NCBI GenBank assembly: GCA_965240325.2
Contig: OZ251235.1
Location: 1,178,001 to 1,242,000 of the forward strand
DNA: 64,000 nt
Reading direction: 5' to 3'
Source: Rebecca billardiae RCC1528
Taxonomy: Eukaryota > Protista > Haptophyta
Under the pieces are notes generated by a model. The model ran no database searches. It was not told where the DNA came from and saw only the letters and a program-made list of their open reading frames with translations. A program made the position numbers and the translations under genes. Shown piece by piece: positions 20,596-27,252 of this stretch; position 1 is the first letter of the stretch; every line of letters starts with the position of its first letter.

Positions 20596-21393
20596 TTACG
20601 AACCGCCACCGAGCTGCATTGCCCTGCGGGCAAAGAGGCATATGGCCCCGTGGGCCCCCTGCGCGAGGCTCACTGCGTCGTCGAGGGCATCGGCGCGAAG
20701 GCCAGCCGTGCCGCTCATGGCGAGCAGCGCTGGGAGCTGCGACTCTGCAGGCGTGGCAGGCGTGTCGCTCGGTCCGTCGGCAGCATTGTGACGCACACAT
20801 GCGATGGTGTGCACCGAGTGCGCGCACGCCTCCTCGTTGGCAGTCGGGTCAAGAAGCAGCTGCGCAGGGCAAGCAGGATCTCCTGTGGGACGGCCGCTCG
20901 ACGGTGGTGTAGCCTCCCCCTTCTTGCTCGTCGCGTCGCCCTCGGCGGGGACGATGGCCACGGTCACGGCGCTGGGCAAGCCGCGCATCGGCACGCCTGC
21001 ATCCATGAGCGCGATCGCGGTGCCGTTCACGAGTGCGGCTGCGAGCGCACCGTCGTCCTGCACGACCTGCGCAACGATGCTGATCGCCGTGCGCGGGTGC
21101 AGCGTCCTGACCACGAGCGGCTCGATCAGCCCCTGCAGCGACGCCTCGAGCTCGCGCTCGCGCACGCCTGGCACGCCAGCGCGCGGGCGCACGATCACTT
21201 CGATGGTTGCACGGTCGAGCTCCTCGCGCCGCTTCTTCACCTCGCACGGGCCGTAGACGGCGACGAGGACGGAGGTGAGGTCTTGCGAGTACCGTGCTGA
21301 GCCATCCGCCCGGCGTAGCACGCCACGCTCGCAGCGCATGGGCCTGAGGCTCGCTGGCTCTCTAGCATCGTGCCGCTTCGGCGCGGCCGCCAT
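20596..21393 (-). CDS. RRP46: Exosome complex component RRP46 (RNase PH-like)
   Basis: LRRADGSA, VLVAVYGP, ATIEVIVRP, PRTAISIVAQVVQDDG and ALMDAGVPM. Confidence 0.88.
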   Translation of the reverse strand: MAAAPKRHDAREPASLRPMRCERGVLRRADGSARYSQDLTSVLVAVYGPCEVKKRREELDRATIEVIVRPRAGVPGVRERELEASLQGLIEPLVVRTLHPRTAISIVAQVVQDDGALAAALVNGTAIALMDAGVPMRGLPSAVTVAIVPAEGDATSKKGEATPPSSGRPTGDPACPAQLLLDPTANEEACAHSVHTIACVRHNAADGPSDTPATPAESQLPALLAMSGTAGLRADALDDAVSLAQGAHGAICLFARRAMQLGGGS

Positions 21394-21667
21394 GCTTACC
21401 GCCGGCCAGAGCAACGTGGCTGTGTCCGGGCGGCAGATTTCTGCTATTGAGAAACTTTTCTCAGGGCCGCTCGGTGGCCGGTGGCCGGTTGGCCGGGACG
21501 GCCCGCCAGTTGTGCCGGAACATCACCAACTACGAACGGGCAAACATCAGTCACAGAGCAAGCTTGATGACGCAAAGGCCGAAACCCCGTGCGGCCGGGG
21601 ATTTCGTTCGGCGGTCCTCCATCGCGGTTCTCGGCCCCGAGATCGGCGCGTCTCGCCGGCCGCCACC

Positions 21668-24600
21668 ATGTGGATGTGGCGTGGCCTGCGGGCGGGGACC
21701 GGGGCCGCGCGCGGCGCTGTGCCGCCGCTCGCGCGCTCCCCGGTGCTCCGCTCGCTGTCCTCCACCGTCGCCCGGACGGTGAAGCTGCCGCAGCAGCTCG
21801 ACACCATCCTCGCGGAGTTCCGCGAGTCGAAGTCGCTCGCCAAGGCGACCAAGTCGCGGCCTGAGCTGATGGTGCGGGCAGAGGCGCGGCGCGGGCGCGC
21901 GTGAGCGGCGTGCGCGCTCTGCTGCAACCCCCCCCACCCCCCTCGTCGGGGAGGCGAGGGCCCCTCGTGCTCGCCGCCCATTGGCTGCGTGGCGCGTGGC
22001 GGCCAGGGGCGGCGCCGTCGATTGCGCGCCTCGGCTCGCACGGCGTGCGGCGCGTTGCTGACGTCCCGCCGCGCGTCGCGCGCACCCCGCCTCGCGCGCC
22101 CCGCCGCGCCGCGCAGAAAGTGCGCGTGCAGCGCGTGCTGCTGCTCTGCTCCGACTACGACTCGTACACGTTCGAGGAGGACGGCATGCTGGGAGAGCTG
22201 ATGCACTCCGAGTACGCGCAGCAGAACCTGCGCAAGCCGCCGGTGATCGAGCGGGTGACGTCGGTGGAGCACGCGATGGAGATGCTCCAGACGCAGGAGT
22301 TCGACCTGCTCATCTCGCTGCTGCGCACGCAGGGCGAGAGCCTCAACCTCGAGTCGTTTGTTGAGGCGGTCAAGAAGCACGACCCGAAGATTCCCATCCT
22401 GCTGCTCGCGCTCAACCCGTCGGAGCTGCTCTCGCTCGACTCGCGGGTGGATGAGTCGCTCCGCTTCAACGTCGACAAGCGGCTCACATGGGAGGCCGGC
22501 GGCGAGTCCGCGACTGCGACCACGGAGGCGAACGCGCTCGCGCAGTCGTGGCTGTGGCCGTTCCTGTGGCAGGGCAATCTCTCGCTCTTCACCGCCATGT
22601 TCAAGGCGGTGGAGGACCGGCTGAACGCGGTGGCGGACGTGAAGGTTGGGGCGCAGGTGATCCTGCTCGTCGAGGACAACGTCAAGTTCTACTCGATGTA
22701 CATGCCCATGGTCTACGCCGAGCTCATCAAGCAGTCGGCCGCGCTCGAGGACGAGAGCATGACACAGGCGGAGCGGCTGAACCGGATGCAGTCGCGCCCC
22801 AAGGTGCTGCTCTGCACCAACTACGAGGAGGCGGTGGACATCTTCGGGCGGTACAAGGACCAGACGATGGCGATCATCTCCGACGTCGCCTTCTTCCGCG
22901 GCGGCCAGTGGGACGCCGACGCCGGCCTCCACTTCATCAAGCACGTGAAGGAGCAGCGCCCAGACGTCGAGGTGCTGATGCAGTCGAGCGAGGAGCTGAT
23001 GCGCGAGCAGGCGGCCGAGCTCGACGTGGCGTTCCTGCACAAGAGCTCGCCCTCGCTGCACCTCGAGCTGCGCAACTTCTTCCGGAGGACGCTGCTCTTC
23101 GGCCCGCTCAGGTTCACCTCCGAGTCCGGCGCGGTGGTTGCCGAGGTGCGCACACGCGCCGCGCCCGCGACGACCTTGCGCGCTCGGCCGCCGCGCCGCG
23201 CACGCCGCCGCCGCCGCCGCCGCCGCGGGAGAAGCGAGGGCGAGGGAGTGAGCGAGGCGGAGGGCGCGCGGCAGCGCACTGGAGCGGCGCGACCCTCGGG
23301 CCGCGAGGCTGCACGCGCCCTCGCGCGGGCGCGGGCGCGCATCTGGGCCCTGCCCGGGCTCGCGCCGTGCTGCGCGCGCGCGCGGCTGCTTGGTGTCGGG
23401 GCCGCGGCCAGCCAGCCGCCTGGCGAGGCGCGCCGCCCGCTCACGCGGCCGCGCGCGCGCGCGCGCACACACGCTGCCGCCGTCGCGCCGCGCCCGCAGG
23501 CGAGCAACATCACGCAGCTGATGAAGGTGTACGCCAACCTGCCCGAGGACGTGATCGACCGCACGGCGCGCACCAACACGCTCTCGAAGTGGTTCCGCGC
23601 GCGCGCCGAGCCCGCGCTCGCCACGCACTTCACCGCGTCGCGCTACCCAGACGACTTTCTGCCTCACTACGCCGGCGCGGGGTTCAAGTCGGAGAAGGAG
23701 ATGCTGCGGCACTGGGTGATCACCTCGATGTTCTCGCTGCGCAACCGGCTCACCGGCGCGGTCTCCGACGCGTCCGAGTCCGACGCGATGACCCCGATCG
23801 TGCGCGTGGGCAAGGGGTCGCTCGGAGGCAAGGGCCGCGGCTTCCGGCTGCTGCACAATTTGATGGACGCCTTCGACATTCAGACGGCGCTGATGCCGCA
23901 GGTGAAGCTGGAGGTGCCGCAGTGCCTGATCCTCGCGACGGACGTGTTCGACCGGTTCATCGAGTCCAACGAGCTCATCGGCACCGTCATGACCTCGCAC
24001 TCCGACGACGAGATCCAGTCGCTCTTCGACGCGGCGACGCTGCCGGTCGACGCGATGGACGCGCTCAAAAAGTATGCGGAGCGCACGGGCACGCCCATCG
24101 CGGTGCGCTCGTCGTCGCTGTTCGAGGACGCGTTCCAGCAGCCGTTCGCCGGGGTGTACGAGTCGTACATGCTGAGCAACACCGAGGGCGGCATCCCCGA
24201 GCGCGTCAACGCGCTTGCATCCGCCGTCAAGCGCGTGTACGCGTCGGTCTTCTCGCTCGAGGCTCGGCGTTACGCAGAGGCGTCTCGGCTCACGGTCGCC
24301 AACGAGAAGATGGCCGTGATCATCCAGGCGATCGCGGGGAAGGAGCACTCGGCGGGCGTGTTCTCGCCGTCGCTGGCGGGCGTGGCCAACGCGATTGACT
24401 TCTACCCGCGGCCGCACACCACCACCGACGACGGCTGCGCCACCATGTCGTACGGCTTCGGCTCGTCGGTCGTCGACGGCAACTCGGCGCTCACCTGGTC
24501 GCTCGGCGACCCGTCGTACACCGTCGGCAGCCCGAGCGATTTCATGGTGCTCAGCCTCGGGGACGGCGTGGGCGTGAACACGGGGGGCGTGGTGGTGAGC

Positions 24601-25993
24601 GACTCCGCGCTCAACAAGGTCGGCGCCTCGCAGCTCGGCGCCTTCGGCCTGATGAAGACCGTCGCGAGCTCGAAGCACGCGCCGATCGTCGAGCTGCAGA
24701 CCAAGGACGCGCACGGCCAGCAAGTCGTGTTTACGCACCGCTCGACGCCGCACGAGCCCGCGCCGCACGCGCCGCCGGCGGAGCTGACCGAGCTGACGCT
24801 GCAGCAGGTGGTGCGCGGCGACGCGTTCCCGCTCTCGCCCGCGCTCTCCTTCTTCCTCCAGCTCGGCACCGCCGCGCTCGCGTGCCCCGTCGAGGTCGAG
24901 TTTGCGATCAACCTGCGCAAGTCGATTCACGAGGTGCACGAGCTGCACATCTTGCAGATCCGGCCGATGCCGCAGCTCATCTCGGACTCCAAGTCGACCA
25001 AGGCGCTGCGCTTCTCGTACCTCCCCTCCACGCAGCACGCCTTCGTCACCTCCAAGCACGCCCTCGGCCACGGCCGCTTCAACAACATCACCGACGTCAT
25101 CTACGTCTCCCCGGACGCCTTCACGCCCGAGAACTCGGACGAGATCGCGCGCGAGATCGGCGAGCTGAACGCGGTGCTGCGCAAGAAGGGGAAGAAGTAC
25201 ATGCTCGTCGGGCCGGGGCGGTGGGGCACGCGGGACAAGGCGCGCGGCATCCCGGTGAACTGGAGCCAGGTGCGCCGCGCCGCACCGCGCATGCGCACGC
25301 CGCGCACGCGCGCGCCGCCCCGCACACCGCGCCGCGTGCGCGCGCCGCCGCGCGCCGCGCACTCGCCTCGCGCGTTGCGCGTCGCGCGCCAACTCTCTCT
25401 CCGCTCACGTCGGCCCCCGCCCCCGCGCGCGGCGCGTCGCCCCGCCGCGCGCGCAGATCGACGCGTCGCAGTTCATCATCGAGACGTCGCTCTCGTCCGC
25501 GTCCGGCGGCACCGCCGTGCCGCCCTCGCAGGGCGCGCACTTCTTCCAGAACATCATGTCGTTCGGGCTCGGGTACATGACGGTGGACCAGCGCGACGCC
25601 TCAAAGGAGGAGGACATCGACTACGCGTGGCTCGACGCACAAGAGAAGGTGGGCCGCCGCCGCGAGCCCCGCGCGCGCCCGGCGGCGCGCGCCTCGCGGC
25701 GCTGCCGCCGCTCCGGACTGACACGCCCGCGCGCGCTTGCGCGCGTGCCGCCGCCGCGCGACCGTTCCTTCTTTGATGTCTTTTTTCTTTTCCGCGCTCA
25801 GGTGTCGCACTCGGCGGAGCTGCCGGCGCTGCGCTACGTGCAGCACGTCACGCTGCCCGAGGAGCTCGAGGTCGTGTGCGACGGCCTCTCGCGCCGCGGC
25901 GTCATCATGAAGCCGGGCAAGCCCTTCGACACGTACGTCGCGCAGGTCGACGCCATGATGGCTATCACTTCGGAGAGCGGCGGGATGAACTGA
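21668..25993 (+). CDS. Mitochondrion-targeted receiver-domain / PEP-pyruvate-binding (PPDK_N ATP-grasp) protein of bacterial type; exons 21668-21871, 22117-23145, 23500-25269, 25457-25648, 25802-25993
   Basis: Presequence MWMWRGLRAG...RSLSS. Receiver-like VILLVEDN and AIISDV. ATP-grasp GSLGGKGRG, IAVRSSSLFED..QPFAGVYES, EKMAVIIQ, VEVEFA, ILQIRP. C-terminal GPGRWG, GIPVNW and PSQGAHFFQN. All four introns are frame-consistent. Confidence 0.88.
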
Positions 25994-26789
25994 ATGAGCC
26001 GCGCGCACGAGCGCGCGGCCGCGCACCGTGCGCAGCCGCGCGCCGCGCCTCGTGCTCGCAGCTGCTCGGCTGGCGCCGAGCACACCCAGTGGCGACAGGT
26101 CGCGCGGCCACCTCCGGCTCCGGGCGTACCCTGGCAACTTGCGGCATGTGGCATCGACGCGCGCGCACCATGGGCGGTGCACGCCCGGCCGCCGTGAGTC
26201 ATCCCTGCTGGAAGCTTATTGCGGCAGCACCTGACACCTGTCGTCGCCCGACGCTCACTACGCTGCCGGGCCTCGCGTGCACGTGTGACTGCCGACGATG
26301 CGTACGCATTATCATGGCGCTCGTCATGCAGCAGGCTTCAACTACGGACGCGCATAACTCGCGTAGTCATATTATAATATATATTATATATATAATATAT
26401 TAGCATACAGCTAGCTACTAGCTAGACTCCTAAGACTTAGCAGAGAATTCAGCAGTCGTCTCAGTAGAGTTAGACAGTAGACAGTAGTAGTATCACGGCT
26501 GTCCGCGACCGCGGGTCCGGCGCGCTATATATGATCGGCTACGCCGATCTTCGGGTAGTGAACAACGAAGTTGAGGGCGCACGGCCCTATGTACAGAATA
26601 TCACAGTTGCATAAACTCACAATCACAGCATGCCTACCAGAATACGTGTAACCGTACTCGCGGTTGTACTTGTAGTCGGCGTCGCGAGTTCACCAATGAC
26701 CGAGCAGGCAGCCAATACACGGCACGATTAGGCCCGCGACCAGCCTCGTGAGCGCGACCGAGCCAGAGGTGGTCGGCGGCATCGAACCC

Positions 26790-27252
26790 CACCGCGCTCG
26801 CTCGTCGAGCTGCGCACGGGTATCGGTGCGCGCGCGCCAACGCGGCGCGCCGTGCTCGCGCCCGGCGGCTGCACTGAGTGCACACCTGCCGTCGCGCGCG
26901 CACGGGCGCGTGATGGACCGAGGAGGTCGCGCGAGCATGCACGATGTGTCTGGATGGAGCGTGTAGTAGGTGTAGGCTGCGCTCCGCACGCGCTCCACCC
27001 CGATGCACCGCGTCTCTCCATACGCGTCGAAACACACCGCGCTCGCTCGTCGAGCTGCGCACGGGTATCGGTGCGCGCGCGCCAACGCGGCGCGCCGTGC
27101 TCGCTCGCGCCCGGCAGCTGCCGAAACCTGCTCGCGCGCGCACGCGCGCGTGATGGACCGAGGAGGTCGCGCGAGCATGCGCGATGTGTCTGGATGGAGC
27201 GTGTAGTAGGTGTAGGCTGCGCTCCGCACGCGCTCCGCCACCGTGCACCGCG
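26790..27252. repeat. About 246-bp tandem duplication (2 diverged copies)
   Basis: CACCGCGCTCGCTCGTCGAGCTG...GGATGGAGCGTGTAGTAGGTGTAGGCTGCGCTCCGCACGCGCTCC starts at 26790 and again at 27036. Confidence 0.92.

Follow-up and report, generated by a model that had tools for sequence, protein, structure and literature searches.

A haptophyte receiver–dikinase protein with bacterial relatives is a candidate regulator of central nitrogen metabolism

A gene of a pavlovophyte haptophyte, located in a 64-kb stretch of DNA (the window, meaning the whole stretch that was analysed), encodes a protein that combines receiver-type domains with a dikinase-type ATP-grasp domain and a C-terminal histidine domain. 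The best overall explanation, in which we place somewhat less than even confidence, is that the product is a bacterial-derived, mitochondrial-type protein in which a relay from ATP to H1023 to D324 would switch glutamate dehydrogenase (GDH). GDH is a junction of carbon and nitrogen metabolism, and to our knowledge its post-translational control is poorly understood in most bacteria and algae. Because bacterial relatives of the gene lie beside GDH genes, the algal protein is a strong candidate for a regulator of central nitrogen metabolism.

Results

Gene structure

The gene consists of five exons and four canonical GT..AG introns (Table 1). The spliced coding sequence of 3387 nt is translated into 1128 residues without an internal stop. 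Four introns had been proposed in a preliminary description of the locus, and the alignment with haptophyte orthologues and bacterial homologues shows no gap at any of the four splice junctions. The orthologues that support the junctions include the intron-free transcript contigs P0001 and P0003, with uninterrupted open reading frames. Intron 2 keeps the reading frame and contains no stop codon, and an ORF finder therefore reads through it; it is missing in the Diacronema orthologue.

The product of Diacronema lutheri KFE25_005164 is 69% identical to the gene product from end to end, and a divergent RNase_PH neighbour is common to this locus and Diacronema. The GC content of the gene is that of the host, and orthologous transcripts are present in five haptophyte orders. 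The locus is best explained as a functional nuclear gene of a pavlovophyte haptophyte.

Table 1 Features of the gene and its product, in positions of the window
Feature	Position	Strand	Description
Gene	21668-25993	+	ATG at 21668, TGA ending 25993, read from sequence
Exon 1	21668..21871	+	aa 1-68: leader (about aa 1-40) and N-terminal helix; ATG and GT donor read directly
Intron 1	21872..22116	+	245 nt, GT..AG; junction aligned gap-free with orthologues
Exon 2	22117..23145	+	aa 69-411: REC1, linker helix, REC2, first part of helical linker
REC1, pseudo-receiver (by sequence)	22132..22440	+	about aa 74-176; from alignment columns; beta-alpha repeat secondary structure
REC2, receiver (by sequence)	22657..23055	+	full phospho-acceptor set: E254/D255, D324 (codon 22882-22884), S358, K377
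Intron 2	23146..23499	+	354 nt, GT..AG; junction gap-free in alignment
Exon 3	23500..25269	+	aa 412-1001: helical linker, ATP-grasp domain, first half of C-terminal His domain
PPDK_N-type ATP-grasp nucleotide-binding domain	23812..24966	+	about aa 516-900; Pfam PF01326, E = 3.9e-33
C-terminal domain	24979..25990	+	about aa 905-1128, split by introns 3 and 4; GPGRWG loop aa 978-983, PSQGAHFFQN
Intron 3	25270..25456	+	187 nt, GT..AG; junction aligned to orthologues
Exon 4	25457..25648	+	aa 1002-1065; carries PSQGAHFFQN, 25505-25534
Intron 4	25649..25801	+	153 nt, GT..AG; T-rich tract 5' of acceptor
Exon 5	25802..25993	+	aa 1066-1128 and TGA stop

Receiver domains

Residues Y82 and D83 of REC1 are invariant. 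REC1 has no acceptor Asp: the corresponding position at the end of beta-3 is L137, and the column holds L, P, R, or S across the family. VILLVEDN (E254/D255) and AIISDV (D324) are both located within REC2. The Asp, Lys, and Glu of REC2 are invariant in 82 aligned sequences. Among 93 further bacterial sequences, the Asp is present in 91 of the 92 that cover it and the Lys in all 93; the Ser/Thr is essentially invariant across both sets, which span bacteria and haptophytes. Judged by these residues, REC2 is a receiver with the full phospho-acceptor set and REC1 is a pseudo-receiver. The receiver-like segments and the candidate Asp that had been noted earlier are thus confirmed, but the first domain is only a pseudo-receiver.

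The Pfam Response_reg model scores 20.4 bits on the window protein, below the cutoff of 30.2, and passes the cutoff in orthologues P0014 and P0048. With an orthologue model as query, Foldseek matches the tandem receivers of PleD (E = 1.8e-5). The helical linker that follows REC2 is DUF5752-like in some bacterial members.

ATP-grasp domain

The full dikinase ATP-grasp domain of the preliminary description is recovered by its Pfam match (Table 1). Its residues comprise the GGKGRG loop (K520, codon 23824), RSSS (611-614), E872/E874, and Q893/R895, of which K520, R611, E872/E874, and Q893/R895 are essentially invariant in the same 82 and 93 sequences from bacteria and haptophytes. The full-length AF2 model, made of an orthologue, has a pLDDT of 85.7 and a pTM of 0.81. 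Foldseek matches rifampin phosphotransferase (RPH; 5hv1) at 1.7e-9, and also PEP synthase (PEPS; 2ols) and PPDK (1kbl). NCBIfam gives weak matches to PEPS, PigC, RedH, and RPH, confined to the ATP-grasp domain. The scores are 35-61 bits against cutoffs of 598-883 for the PEP synthase models, and 28 bits against a cutoff of 999 for NF041857 (rifampin phosphotransferase).

C-terminal histidine domain

The candidate phospho-histidine is H1023 (codon 25520-25522), the His of the PSQGAHFFQN segment pointed out earlier. All 82 aligned sequences have this His, as do 92 of 92 further sequences that cover the position. The invariant His is positioned at a helix start, in a G-[SA]-H motif; its register relative to the dikinase catalytic His is a motif comparison by eye.

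The C-terminal domain has no Pfam or PDB sequence match. PF00391 is detected by Pfam in 0/82 members, and hhalign of the family profile finds no significant similarity to E. coli PpsA or PtsI. The AF2 model of an orthologous C-terminal domain, with a pLDDT of 90.4, was compared by a wide VIA-align search, in line with a suggestion to look for a swivel His domain by AlphaFold. The top match is the His domain of RPH (residues 756-867; Z 6.4). Further matches include the C-terminal domain of pyruvate kinase (Z 6.2), the phosphoryl carrier domain of PPDK (Z 5.7 and 5.4), and Enzyme I (Z 5.6, 5.2, and 4.9). Phospho-His swivel domains account for seven of the nine best rows (Z 4.9-6.4), all Z values being below 8, a fold-level likeness that, per the tool, may mean just a common arrangement. 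The modelled domain best matches the swivelling phospho-histidine-type fold, of which it would be a divergent form.

No PEP/pyruvate TIM barrel is found, as the preliminary description had stated: PF02896 is unmatched, and the chain ends 105 residues past the His.

N-terminal leader

The leader is rich in Arg, Ala, and Ser, and its first 44 residues include six Arg and no Asp or Glu. It has no hydrophobic core, with a maximum Kyte-Doolittle score over 12 residues of 0.76 (0.4-1.5 among 18 leaders). The pattern is the same in 17/17 orthologues checked, in which R-x-L-S-[ST] is positioned just upstream of the conserved mature N-terminus; the form in the gene product is R-x-L-S-S. The AF2 model of orthologue P0002 shows disorder over aa 1-42. 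These features agree with the mitochondrial-type presequence proposed earlier, and from them we infer that the protein is probably located in the mitochondrion.

Bacterial relatives and the haptophyte clade

Residues ~67-1105 are collinear with a ~990-aa bacterial family at 35-37% identity, and the window protein keeps 52/52 checked invariant columns of alignment A1. The bacterial homologues are annotated as 'PEP/pyruvate-binding domain-containing protein', 'histidine kinase', or 'CheY-like', and we found no paper on the receiver-dikinase family in the literature. The family, with its pseudo-receiver, receiver, helical linker, dikinase ATP-grasp, and swivel-type His domain, is large, uncharacterised, and unnamed, much as the preliminary description had stated for an uncharacterised family of ~1000 aa. 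It is found in at least 594 bacterial species. The distribution given there was right in naming Bacteroidota, but 'anaerobes' was too narrow, as the family occurs just as commonly in Ignavibacteriota, Acidobacteriota, Eisenbacteria, Zixibacteria, Gemmatimonadota, Planctomycetota, and Myxococcota.

The identified eukaryotic homologues are all haptophytes, with source labels taken for the best 120 of 7027 matches. In unrooted trees, the haptophyte sequences form one clade with 100% SH-aLRT under both LG+G4 and C20 PMSF. Its two branches are Pavlovales and Prymnesiophyceae, and Phaeocystis, Prymnesium, Chrysotila, and Emiliania are among the members. This single split clade fits one ancient bacterial transfer better than wide vertical inheritance in eukaryotes. 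The data fit bacterial ancestry with one transfer to the haptophyte ancestor, in keeping with the earlier proposal of horizontal acquisition; the introns and the mitochondrial-type presequence would have been gained afterwards.

Genomic link to glutamate dehydrogenase

Of 80 bacterial loci, 50 encode a GDH within 10 kb of the family gene, and in 43 the two genes are immediate neighbours; among the 60 loci with full flanks, the latter number is 36. The adjacency stated in the preliminary description is borne out by these counts. No neighbour other than GDH is conserved outside groups of close relatives (45 loci for GDH, seven for the next cluster), and no histidine kinase cluster is found among the conserved neighbours. 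Some bacterial loci alternate GDH-family-GDH-family, and the cultured bacterium Lutibacter oceani has adjacent pairs of a GDH gene and a family gene. The GDHs at family loci fall into two classes that are mutually 30-35% identical. About 40% of the bacterial loci with full flanks have no adjacent GDH, and in Bacteroidales the family gene occurs as tandem paralogues without GDH. The window contains no GDH gene. A functional tie between the bacterial family and GDH is the best explanation of this gene order.

Discussion

Proposed mechanism

In the mechanism that we propose, the ATP-grasp domain would use ATP to phosphorylate the invariant H1023 on a mobile C-terminal domain, a step modelled on PEP synthase, PPDK, and rifampin phosphotransferase. 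Next, D324, the invariant Asp of the receiver, would take over the phosphoryl group from the His. The receiver would stand in for the acceptor domain, since a separate substrate-binding domain is missing from the family. The phosphorylated or unphosphorylated state would switch GDH activity by direct contact. In the alga, this would take place in the mitochondrial matrix and tune the balance of glutamate versus 2-oxoglutarate and ammonium.

A phospho-switch from ATP to His, and from there to the protein's own Asp or to GDH, is likely to control GDH. We infer both the His-to-Asp transfer and GDH as the target. A phosphodonor within the same protein is favoured because no histidine kinase is linked to the gene, yet the acceptor site is complete in haptophytes. 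The family may form a self-contained relay of a new type, in which a swivelling His is charged by a dikinase ATP-grasp domain instead of a GHKL histidine kinase and passes the phosphoryl group to the receiver Asp of the same polypeptide, the switch directly controls GDH, and the bacterial device has been imported into haptophyte mitochondria; we regard this full statement as possible but doubtful.

Alternative functions

The protein could instead be a protein dikinase under receiver control. Its input, REC2, would receive phosphate from an unlinked histidine kinase or from a small donor molecule (acetyl or carbamoyl phosphate, for example) and would switch on the ATP-grasp/His module. The module would then phosphorylate GDH itself, analogous to AceK acting on isocitrate dehydrogenase, by His-to-protein transfer like that from Enzyme I to HPr. 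A receiver at the N-terminus and an enzyme at the C-terminus are the standard response-regulator layout, as in the PleD fold match; the GDH adjacency and the paired GDH-family modules suggest a specific protein partner; the catalytic residues are all intact; and the swivel His domain of Enzyme I can phosphorylate a protein. However, the conserved neighbours of the gene include no histidine kinase, the acceptor site is invariant in haptophytes although no histidine kinase is known in their mitochondria, and no domain for docking a protein substrate is identified. We consider this reading unlikely, if far from negligible. More improbable is a small-molecule, water dikinase, in which the receiver-like domains and the linker would bind a GDH-related metabolite that accepts phosphate from the His, and clustering with GDH would reflect a common pathway, not regulation. 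Most characterised enzymes of the superfamily that combines an ATP-grasp domain with a swivelling His (PEPS, PPDK, RPH, PigC/RedH, and glucan water dikinases) phosphorylate or activate small molecules or glucans, the weak NCBIfam matches to some of these enzymes cover the ATP-grasp domain only, and the invariant Tyr-Asp pair of REC1 has no assigned role. Against such a function, the protein has no recognisable substrate-binding domain (neither a TIM barrel nor a RIF-binding-type insertion) and keeps a full, invariant phospho-acceptor set needless for a mere ligand pocket, and the one-to-one tandem pairing with GDH paralogues of two classes suggests recognition of a protein partner.

Import into plastids or retention in the cytosol, with the function otherwise as in the relay or the other readings, is also improbable. 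The targeting call rests on leader composition, and targeting signals of haptophytes are poorly characterised, which leaves room for this view. Against it, the leader has no hydrophobic signal-peptide core, which secondary algae require in their bipartite plastid signals; the structure model shows it as disordered, and in all orthologues checked it is Arg-rich and acid-free, with R-x-L-S-[ST] before the conserved mature start. It is scarcely credible that the locus encodes a conventional PEP synthase or PPDK, stems from contaminating bacteria, or is a dead gene. The 'PEP/pyruvate-binding' label common among bacterial homologues and the weak NCBIfam PEP synthase matches would speak for the enzyme, which is nonetheless ruled out by domain content, with neither a TIM barrel nor PF00391, and by NCBIfam scores far under the cutoffs. 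Contamination and a dead gene are excluded by the four spliceosomal introns, the host GC, the conserved eukaryotic neighbour, the intact ORF, and the orthologous transcripts of the five orders.

Comparison with known systems

RPH is the best structural match of both the whole model and the C-terminal domain alone, and shares the PPDK_N-type ATP-grasp and the C-terminal swivelling His domain. It differs in having a rifampin-binding domain between these modules and no receivers. In the haptophyte protein, the ATP-grasp domain comes after two receiver-type domains and a helical linker and is directly followed by the His domain; this His domain is about twice as long as that of RPH and has no detectable sequence similarity to it. 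PEP synthase and PPDK share the PPDK_N ATP-grasp domain with its conserved Lys, Arg, Glu, and Gln, and their His carrier fold is related, but they have a TIM barrel for PEP/pyruvate that is missing here. In PTS Enzyme I, whose N-terminal domains are among the top fold matches, a swivel His domain passes phosphate to a protein acceptor (HPr), but is charged by PEP via a TIM barrel in place of the ATP-grasp domain.

PleD-type response regulators also place a true and an adaptor-like receiver fold in succession before an enzyme module. In the haptophyte protein, by contrast, the degenerate domain comes first and a dikinase replaces the GGDEF output, and no partner histidine kinase is linked to its bacterial relatives. 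Standard response-regulator logic, from N-terminal receiver input to C-terminal enzyme output, suits a GDH kinase at least as naturally as a relay. AceK and the PPDK/PEPS regulatory proteins are functional analogues only: they are dedicated phospho-regulators of a single central enzyme and are encoded next to or with their target, but their folds are unrelated, and regulation of GDH by the receiver-dikinase family is only proposed. The glucan, water dikinases GWD and PWD, organelle-targeted PPDK_N-type enzymes of plants and green algae, likewise combine this domain with a phospho-His and substrate modules other than a TIM barrel. They have carbohydrate-binding modules in place of receivers, another domain order, and no GDH link.

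Implications

The tie between the family and GDH is one of the strongest gene-neighbourhood signals that can be expected. The family spreads over the FCB group, Acidobacteriota, Planctomycetota, and other bacteria and over all major haptophyte lineages, and its members keep essentially all residues for ATP-driven phosphorylation of His and Asp. The haptophyte protein is a candidate for a clean case in which a eukaryotic organelle has become the new destination of a bacterial signalling enzyme. If the proposed mechanism is true, the acceptors of the dikinase superfamily would include a receiver domain, and a self-contained relay would place a working His-Asp relay on central nitrogen metabolism in a eukaryotic organelle. 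If the family regulates GDH, it would be a widespread control point of ammonium assimilation and glutamate catabolism in soil, sediment, and gut bacteria, and would be relevant, through Emiliania, Phaeocystis, and Prymnesium, to ecologically dominant marine phytoplankton.

Structure and genomic setting of the receiver-dikinase gene

Four introns of 245, 354, 187, and 153 nt, all canonical GT..AG, divide the receiver-dikinase gene into five exons. The spliced CDS of 3387 nt encodes a protein of 1128 aa without internal stop, and all four splice junctions give gap-free alignments to haptophyte orthologues and bacterial homologues. Every sequence motif quoted in the preliminary description is present in the protein where it had been reported. 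Two close orthologues, P0001 and P0003, have unbroken ORFs on contigs of about 3.9 kb, and are therefore transcripts. Expression of the gene is supported by such transcript contigs of orthologues only.

The GC content of the window is about 63–78%. Intron 2 contains no stops and keeps the frame; a mechanical ORF list therefore contains a false ORF of 1291 aa. An antisense ORF of 1281 aa also covers the gene. Both ORFs are artefacts that owe their existence to the very high GC content, and gene callers of prokaryote style would be misled by them. About 800 bp past the stop codon lies a tandem duplication with a period of about 240 bp, which appears as two repeat families that are 94–95% identical and spaced 240–245 nt.

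Features of the receiver-dikinase gene and its surroundings (positions in the window)
Feature	Positions	Strand	Remark
RNase_PH gene	20596-21414	-	exosome-type
Antisense ORF	21547-25392	-	1281 aa, artefact
Exon 1	21668-21871	+	ATG of the gene at 21668
False ORF	21901-25776		1291 aa, artefact
Exon 2	22117-23145	+	receiver-dikinase gene
Intron 2	23146-23499		stop-free, in frame
Exon 3	23500-25269	+	receiver-dikinase gene
Exon 4	25457-25648	+	receiver-dikinase gene
Exon 5	25802-25993	+	receiver-dikinase gene
Tandem duplication	26779-27252

The closest named match is KFE25_005164 of Diacronema lutheri (1128 aa), with 69% identity end to end, which places the window in a pavlovophyte haptophyte. In the window, the receiver-dikinase gene and an RNase_PH gene (Pfam E = 6.8e-25) diverge across just 253 bp. 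The same divergent pair is present in D. lutheri (locus L093); the microsynteny is thus conserved, and probably also a bidirectional promoter common to both genes. The D. lutheri orthologue (L093 4001-10069) has about nine introns, compared with four in the window. Intron 2 of the window gene is missing there, and introns 1, 3, and 4 are at or near equivalent positions, indicating intron turnover within the Pavlovales. The nine or so introns and the common neighbour in D. lutheri indicate a long-resident nuclear gene. Contamination and a pseudogene are ruled out by the conserved RNase_PH neighbour and the CDS free of internal stops.

More distant orthologues, with 44–47% identity, are found in Phaeocystis, Prymnesium parvum, Chrysotila carterae, and Emiliania huxleyi, and on many marine transcript-sized contigs. 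A prymnesiophyte-type copy resides on L090, a eukaryotic contig of 259 kb.

N-terminal leader

The first ~40 residues contain six Arg, are rich in Ala, Ser, and Leu, and lack a hydrophobic core; no acidic residue occurs before position 45. This pattern recurs in 17 of the 17 orthologues checked, where R-x-L-S-[ST] closes the leader just ahead of the conserved mature N-terminus. Bacterial homologues start approximately at the onset of the conserved mature part. Judged by its composition, the leader fits a mitochondrial matrix presequence and does not look like the bipartite plastid signal, headed by a signal peptide, that secondary algae use.

Receivers and ATP-grasp

Structures were predicted for the orthologue P0002, which is 69% identical to the window protein, and transferred to the latter via alignment. 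The AlphaFold2 model rests on an 82-sequence alignment and is of good confidence (pLDDT 85.7, pTM 0.81), with residues 1–42 disordered. In Foldseek searches with this model, the N-terminal pair of receiver folds matches PleD, and the ATP-grasp matches rifampin phosphotransferase (RPH; 1.7e-9), PEP synthase, and PPDK. The acceptor position of the first receiver (REC1) lacks an Asp, and REC1 is thus a pseudo-receiver. The second (REC2) holds the full receiver set, with E254/D255, the acceptor D324, S358, and K377.

The ATP-grasp is recognized by Pfam PPDK_N (E = 3.9e-33). NCBIfam models of PEP synthase, PigC, RedH, and RPH match the ATP-grasp alone, and far under their cutoffs. A Pfam scan finds neither a PEP/pyruvate TIM barrel nor a PF00391 domain. 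This predicted domain content excludes ordinary PEP synthase activity and, together with the low scores, rules out identity as PEP synthase, RPH, or PigC/RedH. The Lys, Arg, Glu, and Gln of the ATP-grasp, the Asp, Lys, and Ser/Thr of the receiver, and the candidate phospho-His H1023 show little or no variation across the 82-sequence alignment, a pattern repeated in 93 further bacterial sequences from genomes.

REC2 and the ATP-grasp are joined by a helical linker, which in some bacterial members matches Pfam DUF5752 (P0048 aa 337–407, E = 1.3e-6). No such Pfam match is found in the linker region of haptophyte proteins, and no paper mentioning DUF5752 was found in a literature search.

C-terminal His domain

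By sequence, the final ~220 residues show no relative among Pfam families (82 members, E <= 10) or in a profile search of PDB sequences. Alignment of the domain with E. coli PpsA and PtsI by hhalign does not reach significance. Foldseek against the PDB gives no hit below 1e-3, with weak PPDK and RraA rows only, and a feature search of the ESM Atlas returns just fragments of the family itself. The domain modelled alone has a pLDDT of 90.4.

We compared the predicted fold of the orthologue domain with 48,161 PDB representatives. The top row is the His swivel domain of RPH (Z 6.4), followed by the PEP-utiliser-like C-terminal domain of Bacillus stearothermophilus pyruvate kinase (Z 6.2), the phosphoryl carrier domain of PPDK (Z 5.7 and 5.4), and N-domains of Enzyme I (Z 5.6, 5.2, and 4.9), all modest values in a range (Z < 8) that, as the tool warns, may mean merely a common arrangement. 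A PPDK_N ATP-grasp is not known to occur without a swivel His domain as its partner. The invariant His starts a helix, within the motif PSQG[SA]H-FFQNITSF-GIGY, which resembles by eye a 20-residue segment of E. coli PpsA, a likeness not significant in hhalign. Since the top rows are consistently of the PPDK_N-partner type and the invariant His opens a helix within a PpsA-like motif, it is reasonable to assign the modelled domain to a swivel-like phospho-His fold.

Linkage to GDH in bacteria

The mature protein is collinear with bacterial proteins of about 985–1010 aa, with 35–37% identity. A pattern scan in which each species was represented by one genome finds relatives in at least 594 bacterial species, among them Bacteroidota, Ignavibacteriota, Acidobacteriota, Eisenbacteria, Zixibacteria, Gemmatimonadota, Planctomycetota, Myxococcota, Bdellovibrionota, and others.

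An ELFV-type dehydrogenase adjoins the family gene in two of the four first annotated neighbourhoods. When all fetched loci are queried with glutamate dehydrogenase (GDH), it lies within 10 kb of the family gene in 50 of 80 loci and within 600 bp in 41 of 80, mostly co-directional and immediately upstream. By a slightly wider definition of adjacency, GDH adjoins in 43 of 80 loci, and in 36 of the 60 whose flanks extend for 1.8 kb or more on both sides. Clustering of flanking ORFs places GDH in 45 loci (seven for the next cluster) and identifies it as the sole neighbour conserved past close relatives, bearing out a GDH association that the preliminary description had put forward. The clustered ORFs contain no histidine kinase cluster. 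So specific an association implies that the family and GDH are directly tied in function.

GDH and family genes alternate (GDH-family-GDH-family) in L019, L023, L025, and L084, and GDH flanks the family gene on both sides in other loci, such as that of Lutibacter oceani (L056). Loci of these two kinds also include L080, L081, L053, and L062. Two classes of GDH are present: the NADP-specific GdhA type, over the NCBIfam cutoff, and proteins of 415–438 aa that are 30–36% identical to it. Head-to-tail family paralogues without adjoining GDH occur in L003, L007, L034, L044, L047, L061, and L076, mostly in Bacteroidales; upstream in L003 are genes for a class IV aminotransferase and an Asp/Glu racemase. 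The Geothrix locus has no GDH nearby.

Origin of the haptophyte proteins

Two unrooted maximum-likelihood trees were built, one of 112 sequences (LG+G4) and one of 61 (LG+C20+F+G4 PMSF). In both, the eukaryotic sequences form one clade (SH-aLRT 100%). The haptophyte clade splits into Pavlovales, including the window protein, and Prymnesiophyceae, as in haptophyte phylogeny. The LG+G4 tree places it beside one Phycisphaerae and one Thermoanaerobaculia sequence, with a long-branch warning; the C20 PMSF tree gives no supported sister group. With the support for this placement lost under the mixture model, we name no donor. Considering the huge bacterial spread and the single eukaryotic clade among the source-labelled matches (the best 120 of 7027), the sequences are most economically explained by a single transfer from bacteria to the stem lineage of the haptophytes.

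Possible mechanism

The protein combines an intact dikinase-type ATP-grasp, an invariant His on a swivel-like fold, and a complete receiver phospho-site. It has no separate substrate domain, and in bacteria GDH is tightly linked. Our preferred reading, put forward tentatively, is a switch acting on GDH. ATP would charge the His; the receiver would sit where an acceptor domain would be, and D324 would take the phosphate; the phospho-state of D324 would then control GDH through contact. Our preference for this reading has two grounds: bacterial loci show no linked kinase partner, and a eukaryotic organelle lineage has kept the acceptor site.

The main rival makes the receiver the input, with the dikinase phosphorylating GDH; we consider it rather unlikely. 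A small-molecule dikinase in a pathway related to GDH is more improbable still. GDH of Bacteroides fragilis is reportedly inactivated reversibly in vivo, which we do not count as evidence.

A literature search on the family found no paper, and no curated Pfam or NCBIfam family spans the whole protein. The family is a member of the ATP-grasp and swivel-His dikinase superfamily joined to response-regulator receivers, and such a variant is new. If real, the internal relay from His to Asp would represent two-component logic of a new kind.
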